A stretch of DNA of 64,000 nt from Hyalangium minutum (GCF_000737315.1 NZ_JMCB01000003.1:558001-622000); one strand, 5' to 3'; positions 8,008 to 55,000 are shown, numbered from the stretch's first letter. The notes: generated from the letters alone by a model not told the origin. Numbers and translations are program-made.

Positions 8008-8730
8008 ATGGGACGCATATTCGAGACACGCAAGGCGACGATGTTCGCCCGCTGGAACAAGATGGCGAAGGTGTTCACGCGCGTCAGCAAGGACATTGCG
8101 ATCGCCGTGAAGGCCGGGGGCCCGAACCCGGACAGCAACCCGGCCCTGCGCCGCGCCCTCCAGAACGCGCGCGCCGCCAACATGCCCAAGGACAAGGTCG
8201 AGGGTGCCATCAAGCGCGCCAGCGGCCAGGACGCGGCCAGCTATGATGTCGTCCTCTACGAGGGCTATGCCCCCCACGGTGTCGCTGTGATTGTCGAAAC
8301 GGCCACTGACAACGTCGTCCGGACCGTCGCCAACGTGCGCATGCGCTTCAAGCGCAACGAAGGCAGCATGGGCAACACGGGCAGCGTGGCCTTCCAGTTC
8401 AAGCGCATGGGCGTCTTCCGGCTGAGCCCCGAGGGCGTGGATCAGGAGGCCTTGGAGCTGGACCTGATCGACCACGGGCTCGAGGAGATGGGCGAGGGCA
8501 CCGGCGAGAAGGGCGAGAAGCAGATCGTCATCCGCTGCGCCTTCAACGACTTCGGCAAGCTGCAGTCGGCCATCGAAGCGCGCGGCCTCACGGTGGTGTC
8601 CGCGGACTCGGAGTACATCCCGACGACCCCCGTGGAGCTCCCCGAGGACAAGGCGACCGAGGTCCTCAAGCTCGTGGACGATCTCGAGCAGGACGAAGAC
8701 GTGCAGCGCGTCTTCCACAACCTCGGCTGA
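8008..8730 (+). CDS. yebC: YebC/PmpR family protein
   Basis: [54 protein letters not shown] and [10 protein letters not shown] motifs. Confidence 0.93.
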
Positions 8731-8757: not shown

Positions 8758-11700
8758 TCAGCGCAGTTGCATGATGACCTGCACCAGCGCCAGGGCCTCG
8801 GTGACGGACTGCCAGACCTGCATGGCCTTCAGGTCTTCCTCGCCGGACTGGAGGCTGCGCTTCGCGGCGCGCTCCAGGGGCTCCAGGGCCGCCTGGATGA
8901 GCGCCACCTGCCTCGGGAGATCCACCGGAATGGGCGCGGAGGCGGCTCGCTGCAGCGCGGGCGCCATCTGCACCTGGCGCTCCGACATGGCCGCCACCGC
9001 CTTCGTGAGCTGCTCCATATAAGGACCCAGGTCCGGAGGCGGAGCCGCAGCCGCCGGGGCAGCCGCCGGAGCCTGGATCGAGCGCTCGGCCAGGGCCTTC
9101 ATCACCTTCGCCAGGTGCTGGAGGTACGGCGTCAGATCCGTTCCCGAAGTCACATTCACCACCGGTGCGGGCGGCGGCGTCTCCTTCACCTCGCGGGCCA
9201 CCTTCGCCACCTCGAGCACGGCTTCGCGCAGCGCCTCCAGGCGCGGCGTCACGGTCGCCACGGGATCCGGACCGGGCTTTCGCTCCTGCTGGCCCTTGCG
9301 CACCGTCTCCGCGGCCTGAGAGACGGCCTGTCCCACCACGCCCAGCTGCTCCTCGATGGCGCTGAGCTGGCCTGTCACGCGAGCGACCGGATCGTCCTCC
9401 TTGCCGCCCATGCGCTTGATGCGCGCGAAGCCCTGCTTGATCTCCTCCCAGCGCTTCGACTTCTCCGGAGTGAGCCGCCCGCGCATCTCGGACAGCTTGA
9501 GCAGGTTCTGCTCCGCCGCCGTGGTGAGCGTCTGGGACTCGCCCTGGTAGTGGTCGTCGATGAGCCGCTCCAGCTCCTCGTCGGTCATCGCCGCGACCAC
9601 CTTCTCGGCGAGCTTGTTCATGTTGCGGTAGCTGCCCTGGAGCTTGAACGCGGGCTCGCTGCGGAAGCGCTCGTCCTGCGCCGCCGAGGCGATGTACTGC
9701 AGGTTCACCTTCAGCAGCACCTTCTGCACCCGGAACAGCCGCTCCAGCACCGCGGTGATCTCCTGGATCTCCGCCGCCGCGTAGCCGTACGAGAGCTCGC
9801 CCGTGTTCACCTCTTCGCCGCGCGACATCCGGATGAACTTGTGGATGTCACCCTGATCGCGCGTGGCCAGCGGGGCCAGCGCCGAGTTCGAGGTGAGCGA
9901 GTTCTCGATGTAGCTGAGCGAGAACAGATCCTCCTTGCCGTCGAGGATGTCGCCCAGGTTGTACGTGTCGGCGCGGTTGGCGAGCATGTCCGGGATCTTG
10001 AAGCGCTCGCCCGTCTCCGTGTACGGGTTGCCGGCCATCACCACGCAGAACTTCTTGCCGCGCAGGTCATACGTGCGCGTGCGGCCGTTCCAGACGCCCT
10101 CGATGCGGCGCTGTCCGTCGCACAGCGAGATGAACTTCTGCAGCAGCTCCGAGTCCGTGTGCTGGATGTCGTCGAGGTAGAGCATCACGTTGTTGCCCAT
10201 CTCGAAGGACAGGTTGATGCGCTCCACCTCCTGGCGGGCGGTGGCGTTGGGCGCCTCCGCCGGATCCAGCGACTTCACCGAGTGCCCCAGCGCCGGGCCG
10301 TTCACCTTCACGAAGGTCAGCCCGAGCCGGCTCGCGACATACTCCATGAGCGTCGTCTTGCCGTAGCCGGGAGGCGACATGAGCAGCAGCATGCCCATGC
10401 GATCCGTGCGCTTGTTCTCTCCCGCCGCGCCGAGCTGCTTGGCCAGGTTGGCGCCGATGAGCGGCAGGTACACGCCGTCGATCAGCTGGTTGCGCACGAA
10501 GGACGTGAGCACCTTGGGGCTCAGCTCCTCCAGCCGCAGCTTCCGGCGCTCGCGCTCCAGCAAGTCCCGCAGCAGGCCACGGTAGGCGTGGTAGGCCGGC
10601 ACCCGGAGCTGGCGGAACTCGCCCAGCCGCGCCAGGAACTCGTCCAGGCGCAGCATCATCTTGCGGTCTGTGATGCGCGGGTGCTGGCCGAGCAGTCCGG
10701 TCACCTCCAGCGAGGTGAGCGCGCCCGCCTCCTGGCGATCCAGCTTGCGCTCCGTGAGCAGCAGCACGGCGGCCTCCGCGGCCACGTGCGCCGCGTCCCC
10801 TGCCCCACCCTCGCGCTGCGCCAGGTACGCGTCCACCCAGGCCCGGGCAATGCGCAGGCGCTCGGGCAGGTTCTTCTCCAGGCCCCGCAGATCGTCCTCG
10901 AAGGCCGGGCGGTTCCCCTTCCGGTCCAGCTGGCCGAGGAACGCATCCTTGACCGCCACGGCCTCGGCGCTGGTGGTGAAGCGCGGCCGCTCCGCTCCCA
11001 GTTCCTCCACGAGGTAGCGCCCGGCCTGCCGGGCCTCCGCGATCGAGTGAGCGATCTTGTTCGCCGTGAGGAAGGCCCCCACGTGATCGCCCAGCTCGTT
11101 GCCCAGCACCGTCAGCTCCGCCGCGCTGGAGAACACCGAGCGCAGGCGGGCCAGGCTGCGCGCCCGGCGGTGGAGAATGGTACGGGCCGCGTCGTCCGAG
11201 TCGAAGGCCCAGTACAGCGCCGCCCAGGCCCGAGGCGTGGGAGCGAAGCGCAGCAGCCCCGCGCCCTTGTGCAGCGTCAGCAGCTTCTCGAGGATGGCGG
11301 CGGCGTCCGAGTCGTGGATGCCGCGCTCGTAGCCCTCATCGAACTTCTCGGCCGAGTACGCGCGCACGCGCTCCAGCAAGGTGCCATCGGCGGCGGACTC
11401 GTGCAGAGCCAGGAGGCTCACGCTGCTCCGGCCCTCCTCCACGTCCGCGAGCATGTTGGAAGCCAGATACTCCGAGCGGTACACCTCGCGCGTCTCGGAG
11501 ACGAGGTGCTGATCCCAGAGTTCCTTGTACTTCTCCAGCTCCGGATCCTCGAGGCGCTGGGCGTAGTCCGTGCCGGTGAGCTGCAAGTAGAGCACGCCGT
11601 CGCGCGGCAGCAGCGTCAGCTCCAGCGGCTGGGTGTTGACGTTGAAGCGGTACTTCCCGAACTTGATGACGGACTGGCCGTCCTCGAAGAGATCCTGGCG

Positions 11701-14262
11701 ATCGCGCAGGGCCCGCAGCGCGTCCTGGCGTGCGCTCTTCACGCGCGAGAGCACCTCGTCCGCGCGGACGCTGTCCTGCAGCTCCATCAGCTGCTCGGAG
11801 AGCTGGCGCAGCTTCTGGACCATGGTGTCGGACGCGAAGTACGTGTTCAGCTCGTCGTCCGACTTGAAGCTCTTGGCCCGGCGCTGCACGCCCACGAGGA
11901 TGCGCTCGGCGGCGCTGAACAGGTTCTGCGCGCGGCGCTGGCGCTCGTCCACCAGTGCCTGCTTCTTCGCCCCGAAGGCCTCGATCAGCTCCTCGCGCTT
12001 CTGGGTGATGGGGCCGAGGAACTCGTCGAACTCACCGAAGCGGCCCTCCAGCTCCTCGAGCTGGACGGTGATGCGCGACATGCCCTCGTCGCACTTCTCC
12101 GGCGTGTCCGCCACGGACAGGCCACTCTCGATGTTCTGCGCGAGCAGCTTGAACTGGGCGCCGAACTCCGCGCGCTTCTCGCGGCCCACCAGCTCCTTGC
12201 GCTTCACCTGGAGCCCGGCGCGCACCCGGTTCAGCCGGGAGAACAGCTCGGAGACCCCTTCCAGGATCTTCGCGCGGGCCAGCGGATCGCCCACCTGGAG
12301 CCCACCCACCACCTCGCCCAGCACCTCCAGGCCCTTGCCCACCTTCTCGATGTCCTCGGCGAGCGGGGCCAGCTCTGACGTGGTCTGCACCGGCTCCAGC
12401 CTGCCCAGCAGCACGTCCAGGCGATCGCCCACGGGCTGGAGCGCCTCGCCCTTCTGGAAGAAGTTCACACAGTCGGCGCTGACGCGGTCCGTCTCCTCGA
12501 CGACCTGCTTCTCCAGCGCCTCCACCCGCGAGAGCTCGATGTAGCGGATCTCCTTGAGGCTGATGAGGTGGCCGCGCTGCTGACGCAGCTCGGTGAGGGC
12601 CTGCATGTAGGCCTCGGCGTTCGTCAGCTCCTCGGGCCGCACCTTCAGCACCAGCGCCTGCTGCTTGGCGTCGGCCTCGGTGATGGCGGTGACGGCGCGC
12701 TTCTGCAGCGCCTGGACCTTCTCGAACTCATCGATGATGAGCTCGGCGGTGCGGCGCAGCGCCTCCATGGGCGCCTGGAGCCCCACCTCGGCGTGCGCGA
12801 GCCAGTAGTACGCGTCCAGCGCGCGCGTCACCGAACCAATCAGATCCTCATAGATGCGGCGGGTGGGCTTCTCGGACTTCGCGCTGCGCTGCAGGGTGAG
12901 CGCGTCGGAGATGCCGCGCACCAGCTCGGCGTTGCCCACCTTGCCCAGGTAGCCGGGGGCCGCGGGCAGGGCGGCGGCGTGCTCGGCGGAGACGAACGGC
13001 GTCTGCCAGATCTGCATCGGGTGGACGCGCGTCGGCTCGTTCGAGGTGGCGCGGAAGAGGGCCAGACACCCGTCCGCGAAGAGGCTGTAGCCGTGCCCGA
13101 GCAGCGGGTTCTGCACCTCCTTGCGCACCAGGTTGTACGGGAAGAGGACGTAGCTGCCCTCGTCGCGCCGGTGGAAGATGTAGAGCACGTCCTCGCCGTT
13201 GGGCGAGCGGATGGCCTTGGTGAACTCCATGCCCTCCGAGGTGCCCTCGAAAACCTTGAAGTCGCCCGTCTGCAGGTAGAAGCCGCCGGGGAAGATGACG
13301 CCCTGGTCCTCCGGGAGCCGGACGCACGCCTGCCCGATGGCGTCGATGCGCACCACGTGCTGTGTGCGCGTGTTGAAGACGAGGTAGCGGTGCTCCTTCT
13401 CGCGGAACGGCAGCACGCGCAGCAGAATCAGCGCGCCCACCTGTGAGTAGGCGATCTCCGCGTCATCCAGAGACTGGTCCGCGTCCGCCACGGGCTCGCT
13501 GTAGATGCCCAGGCCCGTGCTGGTGTTGTTCTCCACCTTGACGGTGAGGTCGCCCTTCACCGTCTCCACGAAGACCTGATCCAGGATGTTCACGTGCGGG
13601 TGGGTGCCCAGCACGTAGTTCTCGCGCCGCGCCACCGTCCACTCGAAGTCGTGTGACGGCGGGAAGACGTGATCGCGCTCGCCCTGGTTGTCGATATAGG
13701 TAGCGCGGCCCTCCACATCGACGCTGAAGCGGAACACCTTGATGTCCCGCAGGGTCAGGCCCGTCTGGAAGATGGCCAGCAGCCGCGACTCGGTGCGAAC
13801 CAGCTGCAGCAGCTTTGCGTCCTTGTAGTACTTGTACAGCTCCCCAAAGTCCTTCACGAACCGGGGATCCGCCAGGAAGCCACCGGCCTCCGTGGTGGGC
13901 ACAGCGGAGAGATCGAAGCCCTCCGCCGTCTTCTCGAACTTGTGCAGCGAGAAGACGTCCGCGACGGTCGTCTCCTTCTTCAACCCGATGAAGACGTTGT
14001 AGCCGAAGAGCAGGTACTTCCCGACGCTGACGATGTCGCGCGGGACGCAGTTGTTCTCCGTGCGGACCCGCTCGTTCCCGATGACGGTGAGCTCGGTGCC
14101 ACCAAAGAGGGCCTTGCGGCGCGCGTTGAGATCCGCGGCTCGGGTGCCCAGCTCTTCCGCCTGAGCGAGCAAACGGGCGCGGATGACCTCGTAGCTGCCG
14201 CCCTCCAGCGTCGTCTCGCCCGCGGGGGCAGTCCCCGCGGGCTTCGCGCCGTCAGTTGCCAT
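8758..14262 (-). CDS. Giant (1834 aa) coiled-coil AAA+ ATPase (DUF3686-type, often labelled 'DNA repair ATPase')
   Basis: Walker A SPPGYGKT, Walker B MLYLDDIQH, sensor-1 VVMAGNPY, Arg-finger-like DMLANR; long coiled-coil middle; N-terminal LEGGSYEVIRARL; strong GC3 codon bias. Confidence 0.85.
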   Translation of the reverse strand: MATDGAKPAGTAPAGETTLEGGSYEVIRARLLAQAEELGTRAADLNARRKALFGGTELTVIGNERVRTENNCVPRDIVSVGKYLLFGYNVFIGLKKETTVADVFSLHKFEKTAEGFDLSAVPTTEAGGFLADPRFVKDFGELYKYYKDAKLLQLVRTESRLLAIFQTGLTLRDIKVFRFSVDVEGRATYIDNQGERDHVFPPSHDFEWTVARRENYVLGTHPHVNILDQVFVETVKGDLTVKVENNTSTGLGIYSEPVADADQSLDDAEIAYSQVGALILLRVLPFREKEHRYLVFNTRTQHVVRIDAIGQACVRLPEDQGVIFPGGFYLQTGDFKVFEGTSEGMEFTKAIRSPNGEDVLYIFHRRDEGSYVLFPYNLVRKEVQNPLLGHGYSLFADGCLALFRATSNEPTRVHPMQIWQTPFVSAEHAAALPAAPGYLGKVGNAELVRGISDALTLQRSAKSEKPTRRIYEDLIGSVTRALDAYYWLAHAEVGLQAPMEALRRTAELIIDEFEKVQALQKRAVTAITEADAKQQALVLKVRPEELTNAEAYMQALTELRQQRGHLISLKEIRYIELSRVEALEKQVVEETDRVSADCVNFFQKGEALQPVGDRLDVLLGRLEPVQTTSELAPLAEDIEKVGKGLEVLGEVVGGLQVGDPLARAKILEGVSELFSRLNRVRAGLQVKRKELVGREKRAEFGAQFKLLAQNIESGLSVADTPEKCDEGMSRITVQLEELEGRFGEFDEFLGPITQKREELIEAFGAKKQALVDERQRRAQNLFSAAERILVGVQRRAKSFKSDDELNTYFASDTMVQKLRQLSEQLMELQDSVRADEVLSRVKSARQDALRALRDRQDLFEDGQSVIKFGKYRFNVNTQPLELTLLPRDGVLYLQLTGTDYAQRLEDPELEKYKELWDQHLVSETREVYRSEYLASNMLADVEEGRSSVSLLALHESAADGTLLERVRAYSAEKFDEGYERGIHDSDAAAILEKLLTLHKGAGLLRFAPTPRAWAALYWAFDSDDAARTILHRRARSLARLRSVFSSAAELTVLGNELGDHVGAFLTANKIAHSIAEARQAGRYLVEELGAERPRFTTSAEAVAVKDAFLGQLDRKGNRPAFEDDLRGLEKNLPERLRIARAWVDAYLAQREGGAGDAAHVAAEAAVLLLTERKLDRQEAGALTSLEVTGLLGQHPRITDRKMMLRLDEFLARLGEFRQLRVPAYHAYRGLLRDLLERERRKLRLEELSPKVLTSFVRNQLIDGVYLPLIGANLAKQLGAAGENKRTDRMGMLLLMSPPGYGKTTLMEYVASRLGLTFVKVNGPALGHSVKSLDPAEAPNATARQEVERINLSFEMGNNVMLYLDDIQHTDSELLQKFISLCDGQRRIEGVWNGRTRTYDLRGKKFCVVMAGNPYTETGERFKIPDMLANRADTYNLGDILDGKEDLFSLSYIENSLTSNSALAPLATRDQGDIHKFIRMSRGEEVNTGELSYGYAAAEIQEITAVLERLFRVQKVLLKVNLQYIASAAQDERFRSEPAFKLQGSYRNMNKLAEKVVAAMTDEELERLIDDHYQGESQTLTTAAEQNLLKLSEMRGRLTPEKSKRWEEIKQGFARIKRMGGKEDDPVARVTGQLSAIEEQLGVVGQAVSQAAETVRKGQQERKPGPDPVATVTPRLEALREAVLEVAKVAREVKETPPPAPVVNVTSGTDLTPYLQHLAKVMKALAERSIQAPAAAPAAAAPPPDLGPYMEQLTKAVAAMSERQVQMAPALQRAASAPIPVDLPRQVALIQAALEPLERAAKRSLQSGEEDLKAMQVWQSVTEALALVQVIMQLR

Positions 14263-14293
14263 GAATGTTCACCGGGAAGGAACGGGTGGGAGC

Positions 14294-16525
14294 CTAGCCC
14301 TGGGACTTCTCAGAGGAGGCCGGCCGGGCGCTGCCCTCGACGATCGGCTGCTGCGGCTGAGCCGCGGCCTGCGGAGCCGGAGCGCTGGTCACCATGCGGT
14401 GCAGGAGCGCCGCCACGGCCAGGTTCTGCGCGTCGTTGGTGAGCCCGGGCTTGGAGAGGATCTCCTTCAGATCCGCGGAGAGATCCTTCTCGCCGGACAG
14501 GTAGGGCTGGGCCACCGTGCGCAGCGCCTCGCCGTGATCGAGCGCGCCGTCCACCGAGGCGCCAACTGTGACGGCCTTGACGAACCGCTCGAAGAACTGG
14601 CCGTCGCCGCCGACGATCTGGAACTTCGCGTGGCTGAAGGCCTCCGCGAGCACCTTGGCCTGAGACTCGGCCACGGACTGACGGACGCGGATGGCCTCGA
14701 GCTCCACATCGCGCTCCTTGGCCAGGCGCAGGCGGAACTCCTCGTGCTCCCGGCCCACGCCGTCCAGCGCCTTCATGGAGTTGGCCTTCTCGGCCAGGCC
14801 CTTGGCCTCGGCCATGAGCTTCTCCTGGATGGCGACCGCCTCGGCCTCGCCGCGCTTCTGGATGGCGCTGGCCTCGGCCTCTTGGGCACGCGCGTGCGCC
14901 AGGCCCTTCTCCTGTTCGCCGGATGCCTCCGCCAGCAGGCGCTTCTGCAGGGCGGCCGCCTCGGCCTCCTGGATGCGCGCCTTGGCGAGACCCTTCTCCT
15001 GCTCACCCGCGGCCTCCGCCAGCAGCCGCTCGCGGATGGCCTCGGCCTGGGCATGGCCCTGCTTCTTGATGACCTCGGCCTCGGCCTCCTTCACGCGCAC
15101 GTTGGCCAGGCCCTGCTTCTCGCTGGCCACGGCGTCCGCCTCCCTCACGCGCACGTTGGCCAGGCCCGGGGCGGCCGTCTCCGCCTGGACGCCCTCGGCC
15201 AGCCGCGCCTTCGCCTTGGCCGTCTTGTCGGCGGCCTCGAGGTCCGCCTCGGCCAGGGTGAGCCGCTCCTTGGCCAAGTACTTGGACACCTCGTTGCTGG
15301 CCTCGGCGGCCTTGATGTCCTTGACGAGCTTCTCCTGAGCGTGGGCCTCGGCGGTGATGAGCAGCGCGTCCTTGTGGCGCTTGGCCTCGGCCGTCACGCG
15401 CAGATCCTTGATGCGCTCCTCCTCCTCGGCCACCGTCTTGTCCACGGCGATGCGCGAGCGGATGACGTCCGCGATGGCCTTCTTCTCCGTCTCGAGCGCC
15501 TTCTCCTTGGCGATGCGCTGCAGCTCCGTCTCCCGCTCGCGGTTGATGGCCTCGAGCATCCGATCCTTCTCGACGCGCTCGGTCTCCACACCCACCACGC
15601 GCTCGCGGTTCTTCTCCGCGACTTCGACCTGGCGCTGCTTGTTCTGCTCGTTGATGAGGATCTCTTCCTCGGCCTTGATGCGAGCCAGCTCCGACTTGGC
15701 GTGCTCCTCGGACTTCACGCGCTCGGCCTCGGACGTCTCGCGGGCCTGGACGCTCTCGATCTCCCGCTTCTGCTTGGCGGCGGCCTCGGTGCGCTGGCGC
15801 TCGAGGGCGAAGATGGCCTCGTCCGCCTCCACGTTGCGCTTGGTCATGGCCATGCGCTCGTTCTGCTTCAGCTCGTTGGTGCTGACGTTCTGCACCGTGG
15901 TGAGCTCGGTGATCTTCCGGATGCCCTGCGCGTCCAGGATGTTGTCCGGATCGAGCATCTCGACCGGCGTCTGCTCCAGGAAGTCGATGGCGCAGTCCTC
16001 CAGCATGTAGCCGTTGAGATCCCGGCCGATCACCTTGACGACCTCGTCCTTGATCTCGTCGCGCTGGGTGTAGAGGTCCTCGAAGTCGAACTTCTTGCCC
16101 ACCGTCTTGAGGGCCTCGGAGAACTTGGCCTCGAAGAGGTTCTCCAGCGTCTGCTGGTCACTGGCGCGGACGCAGCCGATGGCGCCAGAGACCTTGAGCA
16201 CGTCCTCGCGCGTCTTGTTCACGCGCACGAAGAAGGTGACCTTGATGTCCGCGCGGATGTTGTCCCTGCAGATCAGGCCCTCCTTGCCGCGCCGGTCGAT
16301 CTCCACCGTCTTCAGGGAGATGTCCATCACCTCGGCACGGTGGATGATGGGGATGACCACCGCGCCCGTGAAGGTGACGGTCGGCTCGCTCTTGAGCGTG
16401 TTGATGATCAGCACCTTGCCCTGATCCACCTGCCGGTAGAAGCGAGCGATGGTGAAGAGGGTGCCGAACAGCAGGACGCTGCCGGCACCGATGGCTCCGG
16501 CGACTGTGGGGAGATCCAGATCCAT
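14294..16525 (-). CDS. Flotillin-like SPFH protein (YqiK-like)
   Basis: N-terminal TM helix; SPFH domain (EVMDISLKTVEIDRRGKEGLICRDNIRADIKVTFFVRVN); long AE-rich coiled coil with repeated GLA-x-AR/VR-x-x-EAEA units. Confidence 0.9.
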   Translation of the reverse strand: MDLDLPTVAGAIGAGSVLLFGTLFTIARFYRQVDQGKVLIINTLKSEPTVTFTGAVVIPIIHRAEVMDISLKTVEIDRRGKEGLICRDNIRADIKVTFFVRVNKTREDVLKVSGAIGCVRASDQQTLENLFEAKFSEALKTVGKKFDFEDLYTQRDEIKDEVVKVIGRDLNGYMLEDCAIDFLEQTPVEMLDPDNILDAQGIRKITELTTVQNVSTNELKQNERMAMTKRNVEADEAIFALERQRTEAAAKQKREIESVQARETSEAERVKSEEHAKSELARIKAEEEILINEQNKQRQVEVAEKNRERVVGVETERVEKDRMLEAINRERETELQRIAKEKALETEKKAIADVIRSRIAVDKTVAEEEERIKDLRVTAEAKRHKDALLITAEAHAQEKLVKDIKAAEASNEVSKYLAKERLTLAEADLEAADKTAKAKARLAEGVQAETAAPGLANVRVREADAVASEKQGLANVRVKEAEAEVIKKQGHAQAEAIRERLLAEAAGEQEKGLAKARIQEAEAAALQKRLLAEASGEQEKGLAHARAQEAEASAIQKRGEAEAVAIQEKLMAEAKGLAEKANSMKALDGVGREHEEFRLRLAKERDVELEAIRVRQSVAESQAKVLAEAFSHAKFQIVGGDGQFFERFVKAVTVGASVDGALDHGEALRTVAQPYLSGEKDLSADLKEILSKPGLTNDAQNLAVAALLHRMVTSAPAPQAAAQPQQPIVEGSARPASSEKSQG

Positions 16526-16636
16526 TGCGATCCTTCTAACGTGACAAGCGGCGGGCTGTGGCTGACGCGTCCGGAGTCCCCCGCGAACGGCTCTCCGGAC
16601 GGCGAATGAAGCGACGGTGAGACGTCGCCAAGAGGG

Positions 16637-17503
16637 CTAATGGACCCGATCCCGTGCACGGGCGGCGATGGCGGTGGCCTTCGCCGGGTCCTGAATCTGG
16701 GCGATCTCCTCTGGGAGGAGGAAATCGACAGGCTCCACCTCGTAGACGTCCCGCGCCGGGTCGTAGCCGAGGATGAGCGCCTGATCGCCGCGCTTGAGCT
16801 CATTGTCGCGAGCGCAGAAGACGTTGAGGATGAGCCCGGCGCCGCCATCCGCGAGCGTGGCGTGGCCATGAGCGCCCGTGACGCTGCCGCTGTTGATGGT
16901 GCACACGCGGCCCATGAGCGAGTCCCGCCCGGGGGCCTGCTTGGCGATGAAGATGGGGCGCAGCGGCCTCACGGCCAGCGACGCCGCGAGCGTCCCGAGC
17001 ACCGAGCACAGCACAAAGAGGCCCGCGCCAATGGCAGCCCCCGGCACGAAGGAGCCCAGCAGGTTGTAGGCCGGGCCCCGGGTCGCGATGGAGAGGATCC
17101 AGGCCGCGAAGATGACGAAGCTGAAGGAGATCGTCACCGGGATGCCCGCGAAGCCCAGCGAGGCGAAGAGGCCCGACGCATCCCCGTCTACGTCATGATC
17201 GTGTCCGGCGTGGCCGTGAGCATCCGCGCCCTCGAAGGCACCCGAGGCGGCCTTGGCGCCACCCTCCAGCATGCCCCCGGCGGCCTTGGCACCACCCTCC
17301 AGGAGTCCACCGGCGGCCTTGGCACCGCCCTCCAGGAGTCCACCGGCGGCCTTGGCACCCGCCGAGAGGTCCACATCCCCATCGAGGACGTCGATTCCCA
17401 CTGCGCCGAGGATGACGCACAGCCAGTACGTCAGCGTCACCCCCATAAGGATGGTGAAGAAGGCGGTGGGGAACGCGAGGATGGACTCGAGGAAGGGAGA
17501 CAT
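16637..17503 (-). CDS. DUF1449/YqiJ-like inner-membrane protein (NfeD-like OB-fold C-terminus)
   Basis: Several TM helices (FPTAFFTILMGVTL..., FASLGFAGIPVTISFS); C-terminal GRVCTINSGSVT...G.A.L.DGGAGLILNV OB-fold. Likely start MSPFLES at 17503 rather than 17629. Confidence 0.8.
   Translation of the reverse strand: MSPFLESILAFPTAFFTILMGVTLTYWLCVILGAVGIDVLDGDVDLSAGAKAAGGLLEGGAKAAGGLLEGGAKAAGGMLEGGAKAASGAFEGADAHGHAGHDHDVDGDASGLFASLGFAGIPVTISFSFVIFAAWILSIATRGPAYNLLGSFVPGAAIGAGLFVLCSVLGTLAASLAVRPLRPIFIAKQAPGRDSLMGRVCTINSGSVTGAHGHATLADGGAGLILNVFCARDNELKRGDQALILGYDPARDVYEVEPVDFLLPEEIAQIQDPAKATAIAARARDRVH
17246..17360. repeat. 33-bp tandem repeat (about 3.5 copies) encoding GAKAAGGLLEG
   Basis: Unit ggcggccttggcaccaccctccaggagtccacc starts at 17246, 17279, 17312 and 17345. 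Confidence 0.9.
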
Positions 17504-17658
17504 CAGCCCAAGGGTTGGTGTTCCAAGAAAGTCTAGACGATCAGGGGGGCGGCCAGGGAAGCCCCGCCGGACGAATCTGGTCACGCTTGCCTGCCCCTCA
17601 TGCCACCTGCCTGTAGCGGATTGCAGCAAGGGGGCAGGCTGCGCATCCCAACTGGGCC

Positions 17659-18693
17659 ATGACCCAGATTGAGTGCCTGCAGCAGAAGGGAATCCGGCGA
17701 CTAGGGAGCCCCCAGCGAGGCTTCCGGTATGTGCGAGCGGACGGGCGCCCGGTCTCTGCCCAGGAGCGCGAGCGGATCCAGGCGCTCAAGCTCCCGCCGG
17801 CCTGGAAGGACGTGGCGATCTCGTCGGCGGCGAAGGCGAAGCTGCAGGCCATTGGGAAGGACAACGCGGGCCGGTGGCAGTACCGCTACCACGAGTCCTT
17901 TTCGAAGCGGCAGCAGGAGGAGAAGTACAAGCGCATCGTGGGCTTTGCGCGCGCCCTTCCCCGCATGCGGCACCGGGTGAGCGTGGATCTGCGCAAGAAG
18001 GGCCTGGGGCGGGACAAGGTGCTGGCGTGCATGCTGCGCATCCTCGGCACGTGCTTCATCCGGCCGGGGAGCCAGGTGTACGCGGAGGAGAACGGCAGCT
18101 TCGGGCTGGCCACGCTGCGCGCCAAGCACGTGAAGGTGGTGGGGGACACGGTGCTCTTCGACTTCCCGGGCAAGAGCGGCCAGCAGCAGCACCGGGAGCT
18201 GAAGGATCGACGCGTCGCGGTGATCGTGCGGCAACTGCTGAAGGTGCCGGGCCGGGACGTCTTCAAGTTCGTGCTGGATGACGGCCACATCGTGGACGTG
18301 CGCCGCCGCCACATCAACGAGTACATCCAGGAAGTGATGGGCCCCGACTACAGCGCCAAGGACTTCCGGACGTGGGGCGGCACGCTGATCTGCGCGTGCG
18401 CGCTGGCTCGGGCCCGTCACCGGCTCAATCACGCGGCGGTCGAGGGCTGCGTGAAGGCGGTGAAGAAGACCATGGTGGCCGCGGTGCGCGAGGCCGCCGA
18501 GCACCTGGGCAACACGCCAGCGGTGGCGAGGTCCTCGTACATCTACCCGTCGGTCCTGGCGATGTTCGAGCAGGGCAAGGTCGTGGGAAAGTACTTCGAG
18601 TCCGTGGAGGAGCTGACGAAGCACGACGCGCCGGAGCTGCACTGCTCGGAGAAGGCGCTGCTGTCGATGCTGAAGGACGGCGCGGCCGTGTGA
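17659..18693 (+). CDS. DNA topoisomerase IB (bacterial, poxvirus-like)
   Basis: Motifs KLQAIGKDNAGRWQYRYH, IRPGSQVYAEENGSFGLATLR, FDFPGKSG, KDFRTW, HLGNTPAVARSSYI (catalytic Tyr). Confidence 0.92.
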   Translation: MTQIECLQQKGIRRLGSPQRGFRYVRADGRPVSAQERERIQALKLPPAWKDVAISSAAKAKLQAIGKDNAGRWQYRYHESFSKRQQEEKYKRIVGFARALPRMRHRVSVDLRKKGLGRDKVLACMLRILGTCFIRPGSQVYAEENGSFGLATLRAKHVKVVGDTVLFDFPGKSGQQQHRELKDRRVAVIVRQLLKVPGRDVFKFVLDDGHIVDVRRRHINEYIQEVMGPDYSAKDFRTWGGTLICACALARARHRLNHAAVEGCVKAVKKTMVAAVREAAEHLGNTPAVARSSYIYPSVLAMFEQGKVVGKYFESVEELTKHDAPELHCSEKALLSMLKDGAAV

Positions 18694-48778: not shown

Positions 48779-49063
48779 ACGCCATGTCGCGCTGCGCGAT
48801 GTTTGGGGAGCAACCGGGCGTGCTTGGCACGACGTCCTGGGCAGGCTCGTTCCAGCGATATTTGCTGATGCCAGGGCGCCCCAGCGTCAGAGCAGGGTTA
48901 CCCCTTGAACCAATACAGCAGGTAGGCGCGGCCTCGCGTGGGGCTGCCGTGACCTCGGGCCGGCGGGGTGCAACCCCAGGCGCGGCTCGCTAGGCTTCGG
49001 TGTCGGACAACCAACAGAACATGCGTTGTGCCGCAGCATCGATTCCCCCTTCTTGAGGCCTGG

Positions 49064-52000
49064 ATGTCATCTCGTCCCCTGTTGTCCGGAGTGTATGTCG
49101 CGCTGACCGCGCTGCTGGTCTTTGCAGCCGGCTGTCATGAAGATCCGCCGCCGCCGCCCAGCGAGCAGCCGGATGCGACGCGCTCGCAGGTGCAGGTGAG
49201 CCGCAGCTCCAACGTGCTGGCCAACGGACGGGACGTCGTCACCCTCACCGTGAAGGTGGTGAAGGCGGATGGTGCGGCGCTGGCGGGCCGCACGGTGAAG
49301 CTGGAGATCAGCGGGGACGGCGCGATCGTCGCGCCGGCCTCGGGCCAGACCAACCCGGAAGGGGTGATGACGGCGACCCTGGTCTCCACCCAGGCCGGGC
49401 TCAAGAAGGTGAAGGCCTCGGTGGAAACGGACGGTGGACCGGTGGTGCTGACCTCCCAGCCCACCGTCGAGTTCATCGAGGTCCCAGCGGCGAAGCTGGC
49501 CTTCCTCAACACGAGCATTCAGGGCACGGCGGGCGCCCCGTTGAGCCCGGCCGTAGAGGTGGAGCTCCAGGATGCCGAGGGCCGTCGCGTCCCAGGCAGC
49601 ACGGCCTCGGTGACCGTGGCCCTGGCGACAGGGCCTTCGGACACGCTGGAAGGCACGCTCACGGTGGCGGCCGTGGATGGGGTCGCGCGCTTCAGCGATC
49701 TCGTCATCCAACAGGTGGGGACGGGCTACTCGCTGCGAGCCACCTCGGGAACGCTGACGGAGGCCACCAGTCCTTCCTTCGCGGTGACTGCCGCGCAAGC
49801 GGCGGTGCTGGAGCTGACAGGGCTTCCGAACAGCCTCGTCGCAGGGAGTTCGGCGGAGGTCCAGGTGACGCTGAAGGATGCCTTGGGCAACGTGGCCACC
49901 GGCTACACGGGCACGGTGCGCTTCACCTCCACGGATGGGGCGGCGGTGCTCCCGAGCGACTACACCTTCACGGCGGCCGACGCGGGGCAGAAGACGTTCA
50001 GCGCGGTGGAGCTGCGCACGGCGGGGTCCCAGTCCCTCACGGCCACGGATACGGTGACTGCCTCGCTGACGGGCACTCAGAGCACCACGGTCTCCCCTGC
50101 TGCGGCCACCAGCCTGAGCCTCTCGGCCCCGGCCTCCGCCACCGCGGGCAGTGCCTTCAGCGTCACGGTCACGGCGCGCGACGCGTTCAGCAACGCGGCC
50201 ACCGGCTACACGGGCACCGTGTCCTTCAGTTCGGATGACACGCGTGCGGCGCTGCCGGGCAGCTACACCTTCACGGCCGCCGATACGGGGGCGCACACCT
50301 TCAGCGTCACTTTGGGCACGACGGGCTCTCAGCCGGTGCGCGTCACCGACGGCACGCGCAACGCCAACGCCACCGTCACCGTCACTCCGGGCGCCGCCAC
50401 CAGCCTGAGCCTCGCTGCGCCCCTCACCGTCATGGCGGACGGCCCCTTCAACGTCACCGTCACGCTGCGGGACGCCTCCGGCAACGTGGCCACCGGCTAC
50501 ACCGGCACGGTCTCCTTCAGCTCGGACGATACGCGCGCAACGCTGCCGGGCAGCTACACCTTCACGGCCGCCGATGCGGGGGCGCACACCTTCAGCGTCA
50601 TCCTGGGCACGGCGGGCTCCCAGCCGCTCCGTGTGACCGACGGCACGCGCAACGCCAACGCCACTGTCACCGTCACACCGGCTACCGCTGCCACCCTGAG
50701 CCTCTCGGCTCCGGCCTCCGCTACGGCGGGCTCGCCCTTCTCCGTAACGGTCACGATGCGGGATACCTCCGGCAACGTGGCCACCGGCTACACCGGCACG
50801 GTGCACTTCACCTCCACGGACGGGGCGGCGGTGCTTCCGGCGGACTACACGTTCACGGCGGCCGACTCGGGGCAGAAGACATTCAGCACGGTGGAGTTGC
50901 GCACGGCGGGGGCTCAGTCCCTCACGGCCGCCGATCGGGTGACCACGACGCTGACGGATACCCGCAGCACCACGGTCTCCGCGGCCGCGGCCTCCAGCTT
51001 GAGCCTCTCCGCCCCGGCCTCTGCCCCCTCGGGCAGTGCCTTCGATGTCACGGTCACGGCCCGTGACGCGTTCAGCAACGTGGCCGCCGGCTACACGGGC
51101 ACTGTCTCCTTCAGCTCCGATGACACACGCGCCGGGCTGCCCACCAGCTACACCTTCACGGCCGCCGACGCAGGCAGCCATACCTTCAGTGTCACCCTGG
51201 GCACGGCAGGCGACCAACCGGTGCGCGTCACCGATGGCACGCGCAACGCCAGCGCCACTGTGAACGTCACCTCGGGGGCCGCCGCCACCCTGAGCCTCTC
51301 GGTCCCCTCCACCGCCACGGCAGGCAGTGCCTTCTCCGTGATGGTGACGCTGCGGGATGGCGCGGGCAACGTGGCCACCGGCTACACGGGCACGGTGCGC
51401 TTCACCTCCACAGACGCGGCGGCAGTGCTTCCAGGCGATTACACCTTCACCGCCGGCGACGCGGGGCAGAAGACGTTCAGCACGGTGGAGTTGCGCACGG
51501 CGGGGTCCCAGTCCCTCACGGCCACGGACACAGTGACCGCGACGATGACGGACACCCGCAGCACCACGGTCTCCCCTGGCGCGGCCGCCAGCCTGAGCCT
51601 CTCGGCCCCGGCCTCCGCCACCGCGGGCAGCGCCTTCAACGTCACCGTGCTGGCGCGCGACGCGTTCAACAACGTGGCCACCGGCTACACGGGTGCCGTG
51701 TCCTTCAGCTCGGATGACACGCGCGCGGCGCTGCCGAGCAGCTACACCTTCACGGCCGCCGACGCGGGCAGCCACACCTTCAGCGTCACCCTGGGCACGG
51801 TGGGCTCCCAGCCGGTGCGCGTCACCGACGGCACGCGCAACGCCAGTGCCACCGTCACCGTCAACCCGGGCGTCGCCGCCAGCCTGAGCCTCTCCGCCCC
51901 AGCCTCCGCCACCGCGGGCAGCGCCTTCAACGTCACGGTCACGGTCCGTGATGCCTCCGGCAACGTGGCCACCGGCTACACGGGCGCCGTGTCCTTCAGC

Positions 52001-55000
52001 TCGGATGACACGCGCGCGACGCTGCCGGGCAGCTACACCTTCACGGCAGCCGACGCAGGCAGCCACGCCTTCAGCGTCACCTTGGGTACGACGGGCAGCC
52101 AGCCCGTCCGGGTGACGGATGGCACACTCAACGCCAGCACCACCGTGAGTGTCACCCCAGCCGCCGCCGCGACCTTAAGCCTTTCGGTCCCGGCCTCTGC
52201 CACTGCGGGCAGCCCCTTCAACGTCACTGTCACGCTGCGAGACAGCTTCGGCAACGTGGCCACCGGCTACACGGGCACGGTGCACTTCACCTCGACGGAT
52301 GGAGCGTCGGTGCTCCCGGCGGACTCCACCTTCACGGCCGCGGACGCGGGGCAGAAGACGTTCAGCACGGTGGAACTGCGCACGGCGGGGTCTCAGTCCC
52401 TCACGGCCACGGACACAGTGACCGCGACGATGACGGACACCCGCAGCACCACGGTCTCCCCTGGCGCGGCCGCCAGCCTGAGCCTCTCGGCCCCGGCCTC
52501 CACCACCGCGGGCAGTCCCTTCGCGGTCACAGTGACAGCGCGCGACGCGTTCAACAACGTGGCCACCGGCTACACGGGCACCGTGTCCTTCAGCTCGGAT
52601 GACACGCGCGCGACGCTGCCGGGCAGCTACACCTTCACGGCCGCCAACGCGGGCAGCCGCGCCTTCAGCGTCACCTTGGGCACGGTGGGCTCCCAGCCGG
52701 TGCGCGTCACCGACGGCACGCGCAACGCCAGCGCCACCGTCACCGTCACTCCGGGCGCCGCCTCGAACCTGACCCTCTCGGCCCCAGCCTCTGCCACCGC
52801 GGGCAGCGCCTTCAACGTCACGGTCACGGCCCGCGATGCCTCCGGCAACATCGCCACCGGCTACAACGGCATGGTGTCCTTCACCTCGACCGATCCGGCC
52901 GCGGTGCTGCCGGGCATCTACCTCTTCACGCCGGGAGACGCGGGCGTGGCCTCCGTGTCCGTGGAGCTGCGCACTGCGGGGAACCGCACCATCACCGCGA
53001 CGGACACCCTCGATGCGGGGCTCACGCACACCGTGGCGGTGGCGGTCTCGGCCGGTGCTCCGGCGCAGCTCGCGTTCACCACGCAGCCACAGAGCGGCAC
53101 CGTGCGCGCGACCCTGGCCACGGTGCGTGTGGAGATCAGGGATGCCTACGGCAACACCTCCACTGCCTCGAGCCCCTCCGTGACGGTGAGCCTCACGGGC
53201 GGCAACCCTGCCTCTACGCTGAGTGGGACACGGACCGTCTCACCGGCCAGTGGCGTGGCCACGTTCTCGTCTCTCTCCATCGACCAGGAGGGCACGGGCT
53301 TCCAGCTCGTGGCCGCCGCCACGGGCCTGACGGGGGCCACGAGCACGGCTTTCCAGATCGTGGACAACCTGGCTCCGGCCGCGGCGGTCCTCACCGCCAC
53401 ACAGGCCTCGTCCTCCAGCATCCAGGTGTCGTGGACGGCGGTGGGCGATGACGGCACCCTGGGCACCGCCGCGAGCCACGATCTGCGCTACGCCACCGCT
53501 CCCATCACCAACGATGCGCAGTTCACCGCGGCCACGCCCGTTTCCCTGGCCGCGCCTCAGCCCCCGGGGAGCGCCGAGTCGGCCACCGTCACGGGACTGA
53601 ACCTCACGTCCACGTACTACTTCGCGCTCAAGGTCTTCGACGGGGCGGGCAACTCCAGCCTCTCGAACAGCCCCGGCGCGGGCGGCTCGGATCCCTGCGC
53701 GTCCGTCACGTGCACGCCGCCGGCCACAACGTGCTCGGCCAATGGCCGGAGCGTCGTCACCTACACCTCGGCGTGCGTGGACTCCGGAGGCGTGGGCGTC
53801 TGCCAAAACACCCCGACAAGCACGCTGTGCGCTTCGAACCAGACCTGCAACGCCGGCGCGTGCGTGCCAGTTACCGCGGCCAGCCAGCAGGGCCAGATCA
53901 TCATCAGTGAGTTCAGCGCCCTCGGCGCGGAGTTCATCGAGTTGCGCAACACCACGGCCACGGCCATCGACGTGCGGGGCTACACGCTGCGCAACATCGC
54001 AGGCCAGGAGGTGGATATCCGCGCTCCGAACGACCCGAACGGCACGGGCTCCACCCCGGTGCAGGTGCCCGCCAACGGCGTGCTCTACGGCATCCCCAAC
54101 CCGTCCAGCTCTGTCCCGGGAGGCGTGGGCTTCATCTACGGCGCGCCGGGCACCTCCTTCGCGCTGGCGGACACAGGGGACGCGCTCGCGCTCTACGCGG
54201 CGCCTCCGGCGGGCAACCTGCAGGACCTGGTGGACTTCCGCACCTTCGTCACCAACCCGAACACGCCACTGACGGCGAGCGCCTTCGTGGGCTTCTCCGG
54301 CAGCTCCACCCAGCTGGAACCCACCACATCCACGGCGGCTGGCAACGACACGGCCACCAACTGGTGCGTGAGCTTCTACCCGAACGGGGCTCGCGGCTCG
54401 CGCGTCACGAACACGGCGGGCGCTCTCAACGGCAGCTGCAAGGTGGCCGTCATCAACGAAGTCATCATCGATCCGCCGGGCACGGACGATCAGAAGTCCT
54501 TCGTGGAGCTGGCCGGCCCGGGTGGAGCCGTCATCGGCGGAGCAAAGATCACGGACGTGGAAGGTCTCGGGGGCACGGCGGGCGCACTGAATGCGGATGG
54601 AGATCTCAGCACGGGCGAGACGGACGGCGAGTTCACCCTCCCCGCCGGCACACGCTTCCCTGCGGATGGCATCCTGCTGGTGGCGGACGCGAACTCGTCG
54701 GTGACCTCGACTCAGGTGGTGGGCTTCACGCCGGGAGTGGACGTCCTGGCCCGGGACATGGACGTGGAGAACTCCGGAGGAGACTCCATCCAACTGGTCT
54801 CCGCCACGGGCACCCTGCTCGATGCGGTGGGCCATGACGCCAACGGCGCCACCCTGGCCACCAACGTGGCCTACAACGGCCTGGCCCTGTACGAGACGGC
54901 CACCGCGCTGACACCCACGACGCCAGCCGGCACTGCGGCCCCCTCGCTCGCTCGCAATACGCTGAGCACGGACACCGACAACAACCGCAACGACTTCCGG

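Follow-up and report, generated by a model that had tools for sequence, protein, structure and literature searches.

A 64-kb stretch of the Hyalangium minutum DSM 14724 genome (the window; record JMCB01000003.1 of assembly GCA_000737315.1) contains three co-oriented open reading frames (ORFs) on the minus strand, at 16637..17503, 14294..16525 and 8758..14262. In order of transcription they encode a small YqiJ-like membrane protein, a flotillin and an 1834-residue AAA+ ATPase. The first two genes are separated by 111 bases and the last two by 31 bases, and genes on the opposite strand bound the trio: a divergent topoisomerase IB gene upstream (17659..18693, +) and a convergent YebC gene downstream (8008..8730, +). 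Given this common strand, the spacing and the opposite-strand flanks, the trio is most likely a single operon. Identical gene calls appear in the public annotation of this record, and all three start codons are backed by the N-termini of homologues. An initial annotation of this DNA had reported the same genes; their coordinates, strands and identities are borne out by ORF calling, a BLASTP match to YqiK, a YqiJ profile and the AAA+ fold. All features described below for the three genes lie on the minus strand.

The small protein (16637..17503) is a YqiJ/DUF1449-like inner-membrane protein of the short NfeD type, as judged from the ORF, hydropathy and a profile match. It has 288 residues counted from an ATG, and the open frame extends to a TTG at 17629. 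Hydropathy defines three transmembrane (TM) segments, at residues 14-32, 121-139 and 160-178. Pairwise BLASTP against E. coli YqiJ gave no match, so a profile was needed to establish the relationship: 30 homologues aligned with YqiJ over 129 columns (hhalign probability 94%, E 1e-7), covering TM2-TM3 and the C-terminal β domain. This soluble β-rich domain (approximately residues 195-262; 16718..16921) is aligned with the NfeD-like domain of YqiJ (residues 132-192) and contains a block that is conserved in the homologue alignment, G..C.V.T..V...FGqA...DGGAGL...V......L..Gd.a....YD.....Y.V. By analogy with NfeD, YuaF and YqiJ, it probably adopts an OB fold (PMC2636767). The acidic linker between TM1 and TM2, which varies in length among homologues, contains 3.6 copies of a 33-bp tandem repeat (17241..17359; Tandem Repeats Finder, 90% matches) encoding 11-residue Gly/Ala-rich units (GAKAAGGLLEG). 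The Hymenobacter orthologue is annotated as 'DUF1449 family protein', and the orthologue in P. aeruginosa is BacC (PA14_16160/PA3730; 213 residues, 29% identity). With its TM helices, C-terminal NfeD-like domain and homology to YqiJ, the protein has the features of the upstream partner in YqiJ-YqiK-type systems.

The second gene (14294..16525) encodes a 743-residue YqiK-type flotillin of the SPFH/Band-7 family. Its identity to E. coli YqiK is 27% along a 422-residue alignment (BLASTP, E 1e-32), and a weak Pfam Band_7 match is on record. It is the orthologue of P. aeruginosa BacD/PaFlo3 (PA14_16180/PA3729; 688 residues, 52% identity). The only hydrophobic segment, residues 8-26, lies ahead of the SPFH domain (approximately residues 31-200; 15926..16435), which was delimited by alignment with that of YqiK and is the most conserved block among homologues. 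An Ala/Glu/Lys-rich region of the coiled-coil type follows (approximately residues 201-640; 14606..15925), assigned from composition and the YqiK alignment. This 440-residue stretch contains 68% A/E/K/R/Q/L and 4% P+G, a composition that suggests it is helical. The protein is longer than the family median of ~690 residues because of two internal, in-frame tandem duplications (87 bp × 2.1 at 14852-15030 and 54 bp × 2.1 at 15055-15167). Sequence searches of structure databases were empty, so membership in the flotillins rests on homology to YqiK, in keeping with which the protein combines a membrane anchor with a long, predicted helical C-terminal part.

The third gene (8758..14262) encodes a soluble DUF3686/AAA+/DUF7902 protein of 1834 residues (Pfam PF12458, PF00004 and PF25472) that is annotated 'DNA repair ATPase'. 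Hydropathy identifies no TM segments. It is the orthologue of P. aeruginosa BacE (PA14_16190/PA3728; 1746 residues), with 50% identity over 1635 residues, and the orthologue in M. xanthus is ~76% identical. AlphaFold2 models cover two parts of the protein, residues 1-560 and 860-1660. In the first (mean pLDDT 85, pTM 0.79), a helix (residues 24-53) precedes a predicted β-propeller (approximately residues 56-425; 12988..14097) with ~27 strands and probably seven blades, and long helices follow. The top Foldseek matches to this model in the PDB are all β-propellers, of the WD40, prolyl-oligopeptidase and sialidase types (E 5e-8 to 2e-5). The second model (pLDDT 82) contains a small β domain, an all-α domain, a single AAA+ module and a helical C-terminal extension.

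The middle part of the ATPase (residues 426-1245; 10528..12987) is predicted to be largely helical, with hairpins, the small β domain (approximately residues 865-905) and the all-α domain preceding the AAA+ module; residues 561-859 are probably helical as well, judging from their composition. Foldseek returned only AAA+ matches for the 801-residue second model, and none for the middle domain (residues 861-1245). The β-rich N-terminal part expected in the initial annotation corresponds to the propeller, whereas the giant coiled coil it described did not hold up: where modelled, the helical regions are predicted to be bundles and hairpins rather than one long coiled coil. The final segment (residues 1651-1834; 8761..9312) is a low-complexity or helical tail, defined from the family alignment and member lengths, with two DL.PY...L.K....A..ER repeats and a conserved terminal helix (VW...EAL). 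The tail is retained in Myxococcota and Gammaproteobacteria but absent in Actinomycetota, where the proteins end near residue 1650.

The AAA+ module, together with the C-terminal helical DUF7902, spans residues 1246-1650 (9313..10527) in the AlphaFold2 model and the Foldseek alignments. It has the α/β fold with helical lid and the Walker A, Walker B, sensor-1 and arginine-finger residues that define an AAA+ enzyme. The single Walker A motif of the protein, SPPGYGKTT, is located at residues 1296-1304 (10351..10377), and Walker B, LYLDDIQH, at residues 1361-1368 (10159..10182), where Asp-Asp replaces the usual Asp-Glu; D1364, D1365 and the following Ile, Gln and His do not vary. In 77 of 80 family members no variation is seen in either motif, in the sensor-1 residue N1412, in R1430 or in a GSYRN sequence; the remaining three are faulty ORF calls. 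This conservation argues for a working ATPase. At the position of the pore loop in classic AAA proteins (residues 1322-1345; ~10270-10300 of the window), the family instead has an invariant GPALGH.V.SLDP..APNATARQE. Among 1.84 billion representative proteins (382 clusters, E up to 1e-30), the AAA+/DUF7902 module is found exclusively in an architecture of ~1550-2040 residues, and the shorter matches resemble fragments cut by contig ends.

Assignment of the module to an AAA+ clade depends on the method used. By structure, Foldseek ranks RuvB first (E 9e-7), followed by the MoxR-type proteins NorQ/CbbQ (TM-score to target 0.55-0.60) and then Lon, ClpA, p97 and spastin. By sequence profile only the P-loop half is matched, best by NVL/Rix7/p97 and RuvB. 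Sequence thus favours the classic AAA clade or RuvB, and structure favours RuvB or MoxR.

The resemblance to RuvB bears on the names 'DNA repair ATPase' and 'ATPase involved in DNA repair' under which the protein appears in databases, and which would imply a repair function unrelated to its neighbours. We regard such a function as extremely improbable. The fold similarity to RuvB is weak, and MoxR, Lon, p97 and spastin fit about equally well. The RuvB models cover only ~45 residues around the P-loop, scoring 23 and 21 bits against cut-offs of 282 and 299, and no DNA-binding or nuclease domain was found in the ATPase models. In P. aeruginosa recJ is located three genes downstream, but it is not conserved in other loci, and the constant neighbours of the ATPase gene are two membrane proteins. 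The initial annotation had held that the repair label lacks support, and we concur: the evidence amounts to a P-loop match to RuvB, with no conserved repair-gene neighbours. The P. aeruginosa yaeQ and recJ genes that follow bacF (locus L083, 12260-15357) might have encouraged this naming. NCBIfam scans of the three window proteins returned nothing usable.

A scan of one genome per species identified more than 567 relatives; the counts given here refer to the best 80 loci, from Myxococcota, Actinomycetota, Gammaproteobacteria (22 loci), Acidobacteriota and Planctomycetota. Of the 77 loci that include DNA upstream of the ATPase gene, 76 have a gene for a flotillin homologue (45-77% identity) there in the same orientation, and in 75 the two genes are direct neighbours. 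A YqiJ-like gene precedes the flotillin gene wherever upstream DNA exists, and a homologue was found there in 72 related loci. The exceptions are two related Labilithrix-type genomes, one with ~6.4 kb of other genes separating flotillin and ATPase genes (L015, 1-8000) and the other lacking a flotillin gene within 8 kb (L046, 1-8000). The trio is also present in P. aeruginosa, on a Hymenobacter plasmid (Bacteroidota) and on a Deinococcus megaplasmid, and the named matches include Betaproteobacteria, for a spread of at least seven phyla (Myxococcota, Actinomycetota, Gamma- and Betaproteobacteria, Acidobacteriota, Planctomycetota, Bacteroidota and Deinococcota). The initial annotation had named a lack of co-occurrence across taxa as one result that would refute it; the three genes are in fact found together in about 75 of 77 testable loci.

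ATPases from different phyla are ~50% identical over 1600 residues, and since the enzyme almost never occurs without the flotillin and its YqiJ partner, it probably acts on the flotillin scaffold. Pairwise distance matrices for the three proteins from 67 loci are correlated (r = 0.93, 0.90 and 0.88; Mantel test, 0/999 permutations), as expected of a jointly inherited unit; species phylogeny contributes to this correlation. The divergent upstream gene for a bacterial type IB topoisomerase is also present in Corallococcus and Cystobacter (L003, 3632-4648; L004, 3614-4618), and the locus is thus syntenic among myxobacterial genera. In one locus (L013, 5088-5546), a 152-residue ORF with a flotillin-like start (a TM segment and 'RYYQV..G.ALV') lies between the YqiJ-like and flotillin genes and may be a flotillin remnant or an extra short SPFH-like gene.

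Genes for PspA-family proteins join the trio in a minority of loci. A YjfI/DUF2170-PspA pair is located upstream in 14 of the 80 loci, all of them among the 22 gammaproteobacterial ones, and in the P. aeruginosa and Hymenobacter records. A PspA profile found no homologue in the 64-kb window, in agreement with the initial annotation, and none in the non-gammaproteobacterial loci of the 80. It is thus the flotillin and the YqiJ-like protein, and not PspA, that constantly accompany the ATPase. A downstream PLD (HKD) gene is present only in eight gammaproteobacterial loci and in P. aeruginosa. Seven loci also contain a gene for a rhomboid-like polytopic membrane protein with a weak rhombosortase match (E 1e-5). 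In six it follows the ATPase gene (L044, 13376-13951; also L053, L054, L061, L065 and L071), and in some Gammaproteobacteria it is located between the ATPase and PLD genes; the L057 copy is upstream and oppositely oriented. The literature that we found on the operon does not describe this gene. The 169-kb plasmid of Hymenobacter sp. DG25B (NZ_CP010056.1; L084, 1604-10917) has the order Tir-type chaperone, PspA/IM30, DUF1449, flotillin and ATPase, next to a gene for a LexA-family regulator. This form contrasts with the report by Wallart et al. (2024) that DUF2170/PspA contexts are exclusive to Proteobacteria (PMC10948618).

The linkage to PspA raises the question of whether the ATPase is a Vps4-like motor for a PspA polymer that would, at the window locus, be encoded elsewhere. 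The likeness is that Vps4 and PspA-linked AAA+ proteins are dedicated enzymes encoded with a membrane-remodelling polymer, and that PspA, an ESCRT-III relative, lies beside the trio in some phyla, with the CesT/YjfI-PspA pair directly ahead of it in the 14 gammaproteobacterial loci, P. aeruginosa and the Hymenobacter plasmid. We nevertheless consider such a motor unlikely. PspA is absent from most loci: it is linked in none of the Myxococcota, Actinomycetota, Acidobacteriota, Planctomycetota or Deinococcus loci examined and is missing from the 64-kb window, whereas linkage to the flotillin and YqiJ-like genes is nearly universal. The ATPase also differs from Vps4 in its N-terminal architecture, with a predicted β-propeller and no recognised MIT-like domain.

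Rather than a new kind of system, the trio is the minimal, three-gene myxobacterial form of an operon class described in 2024, when Ravi et al. gave a computational account that includes an abbreviated three-gene form (mSystems 9:e00847-23, PMC11237479). As in that class, the window has a YqiJ-like gene, a flotillin gene and a DUF3686-AAA+ gene in this order on one strand, and the predicted β-propeller, helical or coiled-coil regions and C-terminal AAA+ module of the ATPase agree with the published architecture. Our analysis extends this account with the linkage counts (~75/77), co-divergence, motif conservation, structure models and the CesT-PspA form in Bacteroidota; there is no essential difference. 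The novelty implied by the initial annotation was thus overstated, since the class of Ravi et al. includes the form without PspA, and the Pseudomonas orthologues, bacC, bacD and bacE, belong to an operon defined by experiment.

That operon is bacABCDEF of P. aeruginosa (PA3732-PA3727; PA14_16140-16200), in which bacC-bacD-bacE have the same order and orientation as the window genes. The context of the P. aeruginosa ATPase in our set (P0131; 1746 residues, 3222 member sequences) is DUF2170, PspA_IM30, a 213-residue protein, a 688-residue protein, the ATPase, PLDc_2, YaeQ, RecJ and LasB, which reproduces the published order from PA14_16140 to PA14_16200 and on to lasB (PA14_16250). This match in gene order identifies the window genes as orthologues of bacC, bacD and bacE, and confirms the earlier statement that Pseudomonas versions add a PspA-family gene, here upstream of the trio. 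The first gene of the gammaproteobacterial loci scores 313 bits against the NCBIfam equivalog 'biofilm formation regulator BacA' (cut-off 300). When the published reverse-transcription PCR (RT-PCR) primers were mapped, a match of the PA14_16180/90 reverse primer to the conserved TENNC(I/V) site required one indel, a suggestive result for the identity of BacE that the gene order supersedes. The window locus lacks bacA (a YjfI/DUF2170 chaperone-like regulator), bacB (PspA) and bacF (PLD); accordingly, none of the marks of the full bacABCDEF/CesT-PspA form is present there, neither YjfI and PspA upstream, nor PLD downstream, nor a σ54 promoter. For the latter, a consensus scan of 17504-17658 for the −24/−12 site TGGCAC-N5-TTGC with up to 2 mismatches found none, which is weak negative evidence, and consensus scans for σ70 promoter and terminator signals of the operon at the window locus were likewise negative.

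In P. aeruginosa, Wallart et al. (2024) used RT-PCR to establish that bacABCDEF is transcribed as a single unit, and found BacB-F increased 6-13-fold in a bacA mutant (PMC10948618). Mace et al. (2008) reported accumulation of PA3731 (BacB) upon hyperosmotic shock but not upon heat shock; without this protein, biofilm formation, rhamnolipid production, swarming and virulence were impaired (PMC2587700). PA14_16190 is among the proteins changed in an rsmA mutant. The ATPase itself, BacE, is listed merely as a 'hypothetical protein' in the bac operon paper (PMC10948618), and literature searches on DUF3686, on 'DNA repair ATPase' with flotillin, on YqiK/YqiJ cryo-EM and on myxobacterial flotillin found nothing on it. 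PA3729 as an interactor of Arc3 was considered and rejected, as its pull-down fold change of ~1.3 is background.

One study found PA3728-PA3732 upregulated in all phage-infected P. aeruginosa samples (PMC12041424), an observation that would fit an abortive-infection type of anti-phage defence in which the trio senses membrane perturbation by phage. Some gammaproteobacterial versions include a PLD-family protein resembling NucT and the DISARM protein DrmC, paFlo3 is patchily distributed within Pseudomonas with horizontal gene transfer suggested (PMC13086221), and in H. minutum a CBASS-type pair, a SMODS nucleotidyltransferase followed by a CHAT-SAVED effector, is located ~8.5-9 kb past the 3' end of the ATPase gene at the left window edge. 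The window includes no more of the SMODS gene than its first ~218 bases (1-218, −); the pair is at 24045-25505 in L001. Defence is nonetheless a highly improbable function for the trio. Its three proteins have no significant match in PADLOC-DB v2, the closest being a P-loop match of the ATPase to IetA (E 0.003), and homologues occur in none of 50,697 phage records and in just 13 of 72,556 records of plasmids, most of these 13 being megaplasmids or chromids. Identity of ~50% between phyla is unlike that of fast-evolving defence genes, the topoisomerase IB flank is conserved across myxobacterial genera, and the three-gene form contains no effector. Induction by phage is also the response of Psp-type operons to general envelope stress. 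The anti-phage option listed in the initial annotation gained no positive evidence from the PADLOC and phage-record searches; with these results and the conserved synteny, we rejected a defence island as the main explanation.

Comparison with other SPFH systems helps to define what is distinctive about the trio. E. coli yqiJ-yqiK is the homologous two-gene core, as the initial annotation had proposed, with the membrane partner first as in the window, but it has no downstream ATPase gene; sibD/ibsD are next. E. coli YqiK (553 residues) is only 27% identical to the window flotillin, whereas the ATPase-linked flotillins are 45-77% identical among themselves across phyla. QmcA-YbbJ and other SPFH-NfeD cage complexes also pair an SPFH protein with an NfeD-family partner in one operon (cited in PMC13086221). 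YbbJ is a long NfeD in contrast to the short YqiJ type in the trio, and QmcA-YbbJ-type systems are not known to include an ATPase. In HflK/C-FtsH, an SPFH scaffold is coupled with an AAA+ enzyme at the inner membrane, a likeness of logic only. FtsH is membrane-embedded and has a protease domain, whereas the window ATPase is soluble, lacks a protease domain and has a predicted β-propeller. The window ATPase has no detectable preference for FtsH over other AAA+ proteins in its similarity, and no homology extends beyond the superfamily level.

The HflK/C-FtsH precedent for an SPFH cage with an AAA+ partner suggests a role in membrane-protein quality control, in which the flotillin would corral damaged or unfolded proteins and the AAA+ enzyme would extract or unfold them without a protease domain of its own. 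In S. aureus, a flotillin-NfeD pair is reported to stabilise unfolded proteins (PMC11222466), the P-loop half of the module is nearest in sequence to the classic-clade unfoldases NVL/Rix7/p97, and the predicted β-propeller could bind substrate. On the other hand, the module has no aromatic pore-loop motif and a non-canonical Walker B, its best structural matches are RuvB and MoxR-type proteins rather than unfoldases, and no conserved protease or chaperone gene lies beside the trio. We judge this role improbable.

In our preferred reading, to which we give a probability of roughly 0.55, the trio is an inner-membrane flotillin/NfeD scaffold with a dedicated cytoplasmic AAA+ remodeller that acts in envelope stress. 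The flotillin would be anchored to the inner membrane by its N-terminal segment and, as other SPFH proteins do, would most likely use its long helical region to oligomerize, building a large scaffold at the cytoplasmic side. The YqiJ-like protein would be the NfeD-type membrane partner of the flotillin. The 1834-residue protein would be a soluble, catalytically competent AAA+ enzyme that docks on this scaffold, probably via its β-propeller and helical part. Under envelope stress, it would spend ATP on assembling, opening, taking apart or clearing the scaffold or the clients that the scaffold holds. The link to stress is drawn from the Pseudomonas data and from the linkage to PspA in some phyla. 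We infer cage formation, the contact between ATPase and flotillin, the substrate, and the stress role and its trigger in myxobacteria.

Several observations weigh against this reading. Deletion of paFlo3 led to only ~20% less biofilm and no other phenotype (PMC13086221), and the published Pseudomonas phenotypes concern bacA and bacB, both absent at the window locus. Neither PspA, nor a stress regulator, nor a recognisable σ54 or σ70 promoter was found at that locus. Solved SPFH structures were not matched by the flotillin sequence or by a 22-sequence profile, so that cage formation is proposed by analogy only. The contact of the ATPase with the flotillin or the membrane is likewise inferred. 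Finally, the Asp-Asp Walker B and the lack of a canonical aromatic pore loop after GPALGH make classic polypeptide threading doubtful.

Within the flotillin-scaffold reading, a more specific mechanism can be suggested tentatively, at less than even odds. The DUF3686 AAA+ protein may be a dedicated flotillin-cage motor, an ATP-driven opener or disassembler recruited via the β-propeller, comparable to Vps4 acting on ESCRT-III or NSF acting on SNAREs.

Elsewhere in the window, which is of high GC content (~0.68), the most GC-rich part (0.70-0.715) contains a 2262-residue ORF (48968-55756, +). On the opposite strand, copies of a 15-mer, TGGCG[CT]TGGCGTTGC, are located at 50358, 50649, 51243, 51837 and 52722, with near-copies at 53946 and 54342, which suggests that this ORF is a repeat-containing gene.

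The role of bacterial flotillins is a long-standing question, and deletions have mostly produced little or no phenotype (PMC13086221). The trio offers a handle on this role. The mechanism of the ATPase is the interesting part of the finding, and the main inferences of the initial annotation agree with the proposals of others. Identification of the ATPase substrate would show whether SPFH scaffolds are actively remodelled, and would also explain bacC-E, the uncharacterised half of a P. aeruginosa operon tied to biofilm formation, virulence and phage-induced stress. It would correct the name 'DNA repair ATPase', which is borne by thousands of database entries. Because the myxobacterial three-gene form is minimal, it is a clean system for reconstitution. 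If the cage-motor proposal is true, the ATPase would be the first non-protease enzyme known to regulate an SPFH scaffold, and bacterial flotillins would gain a biochemical cycle that is defined and testable.

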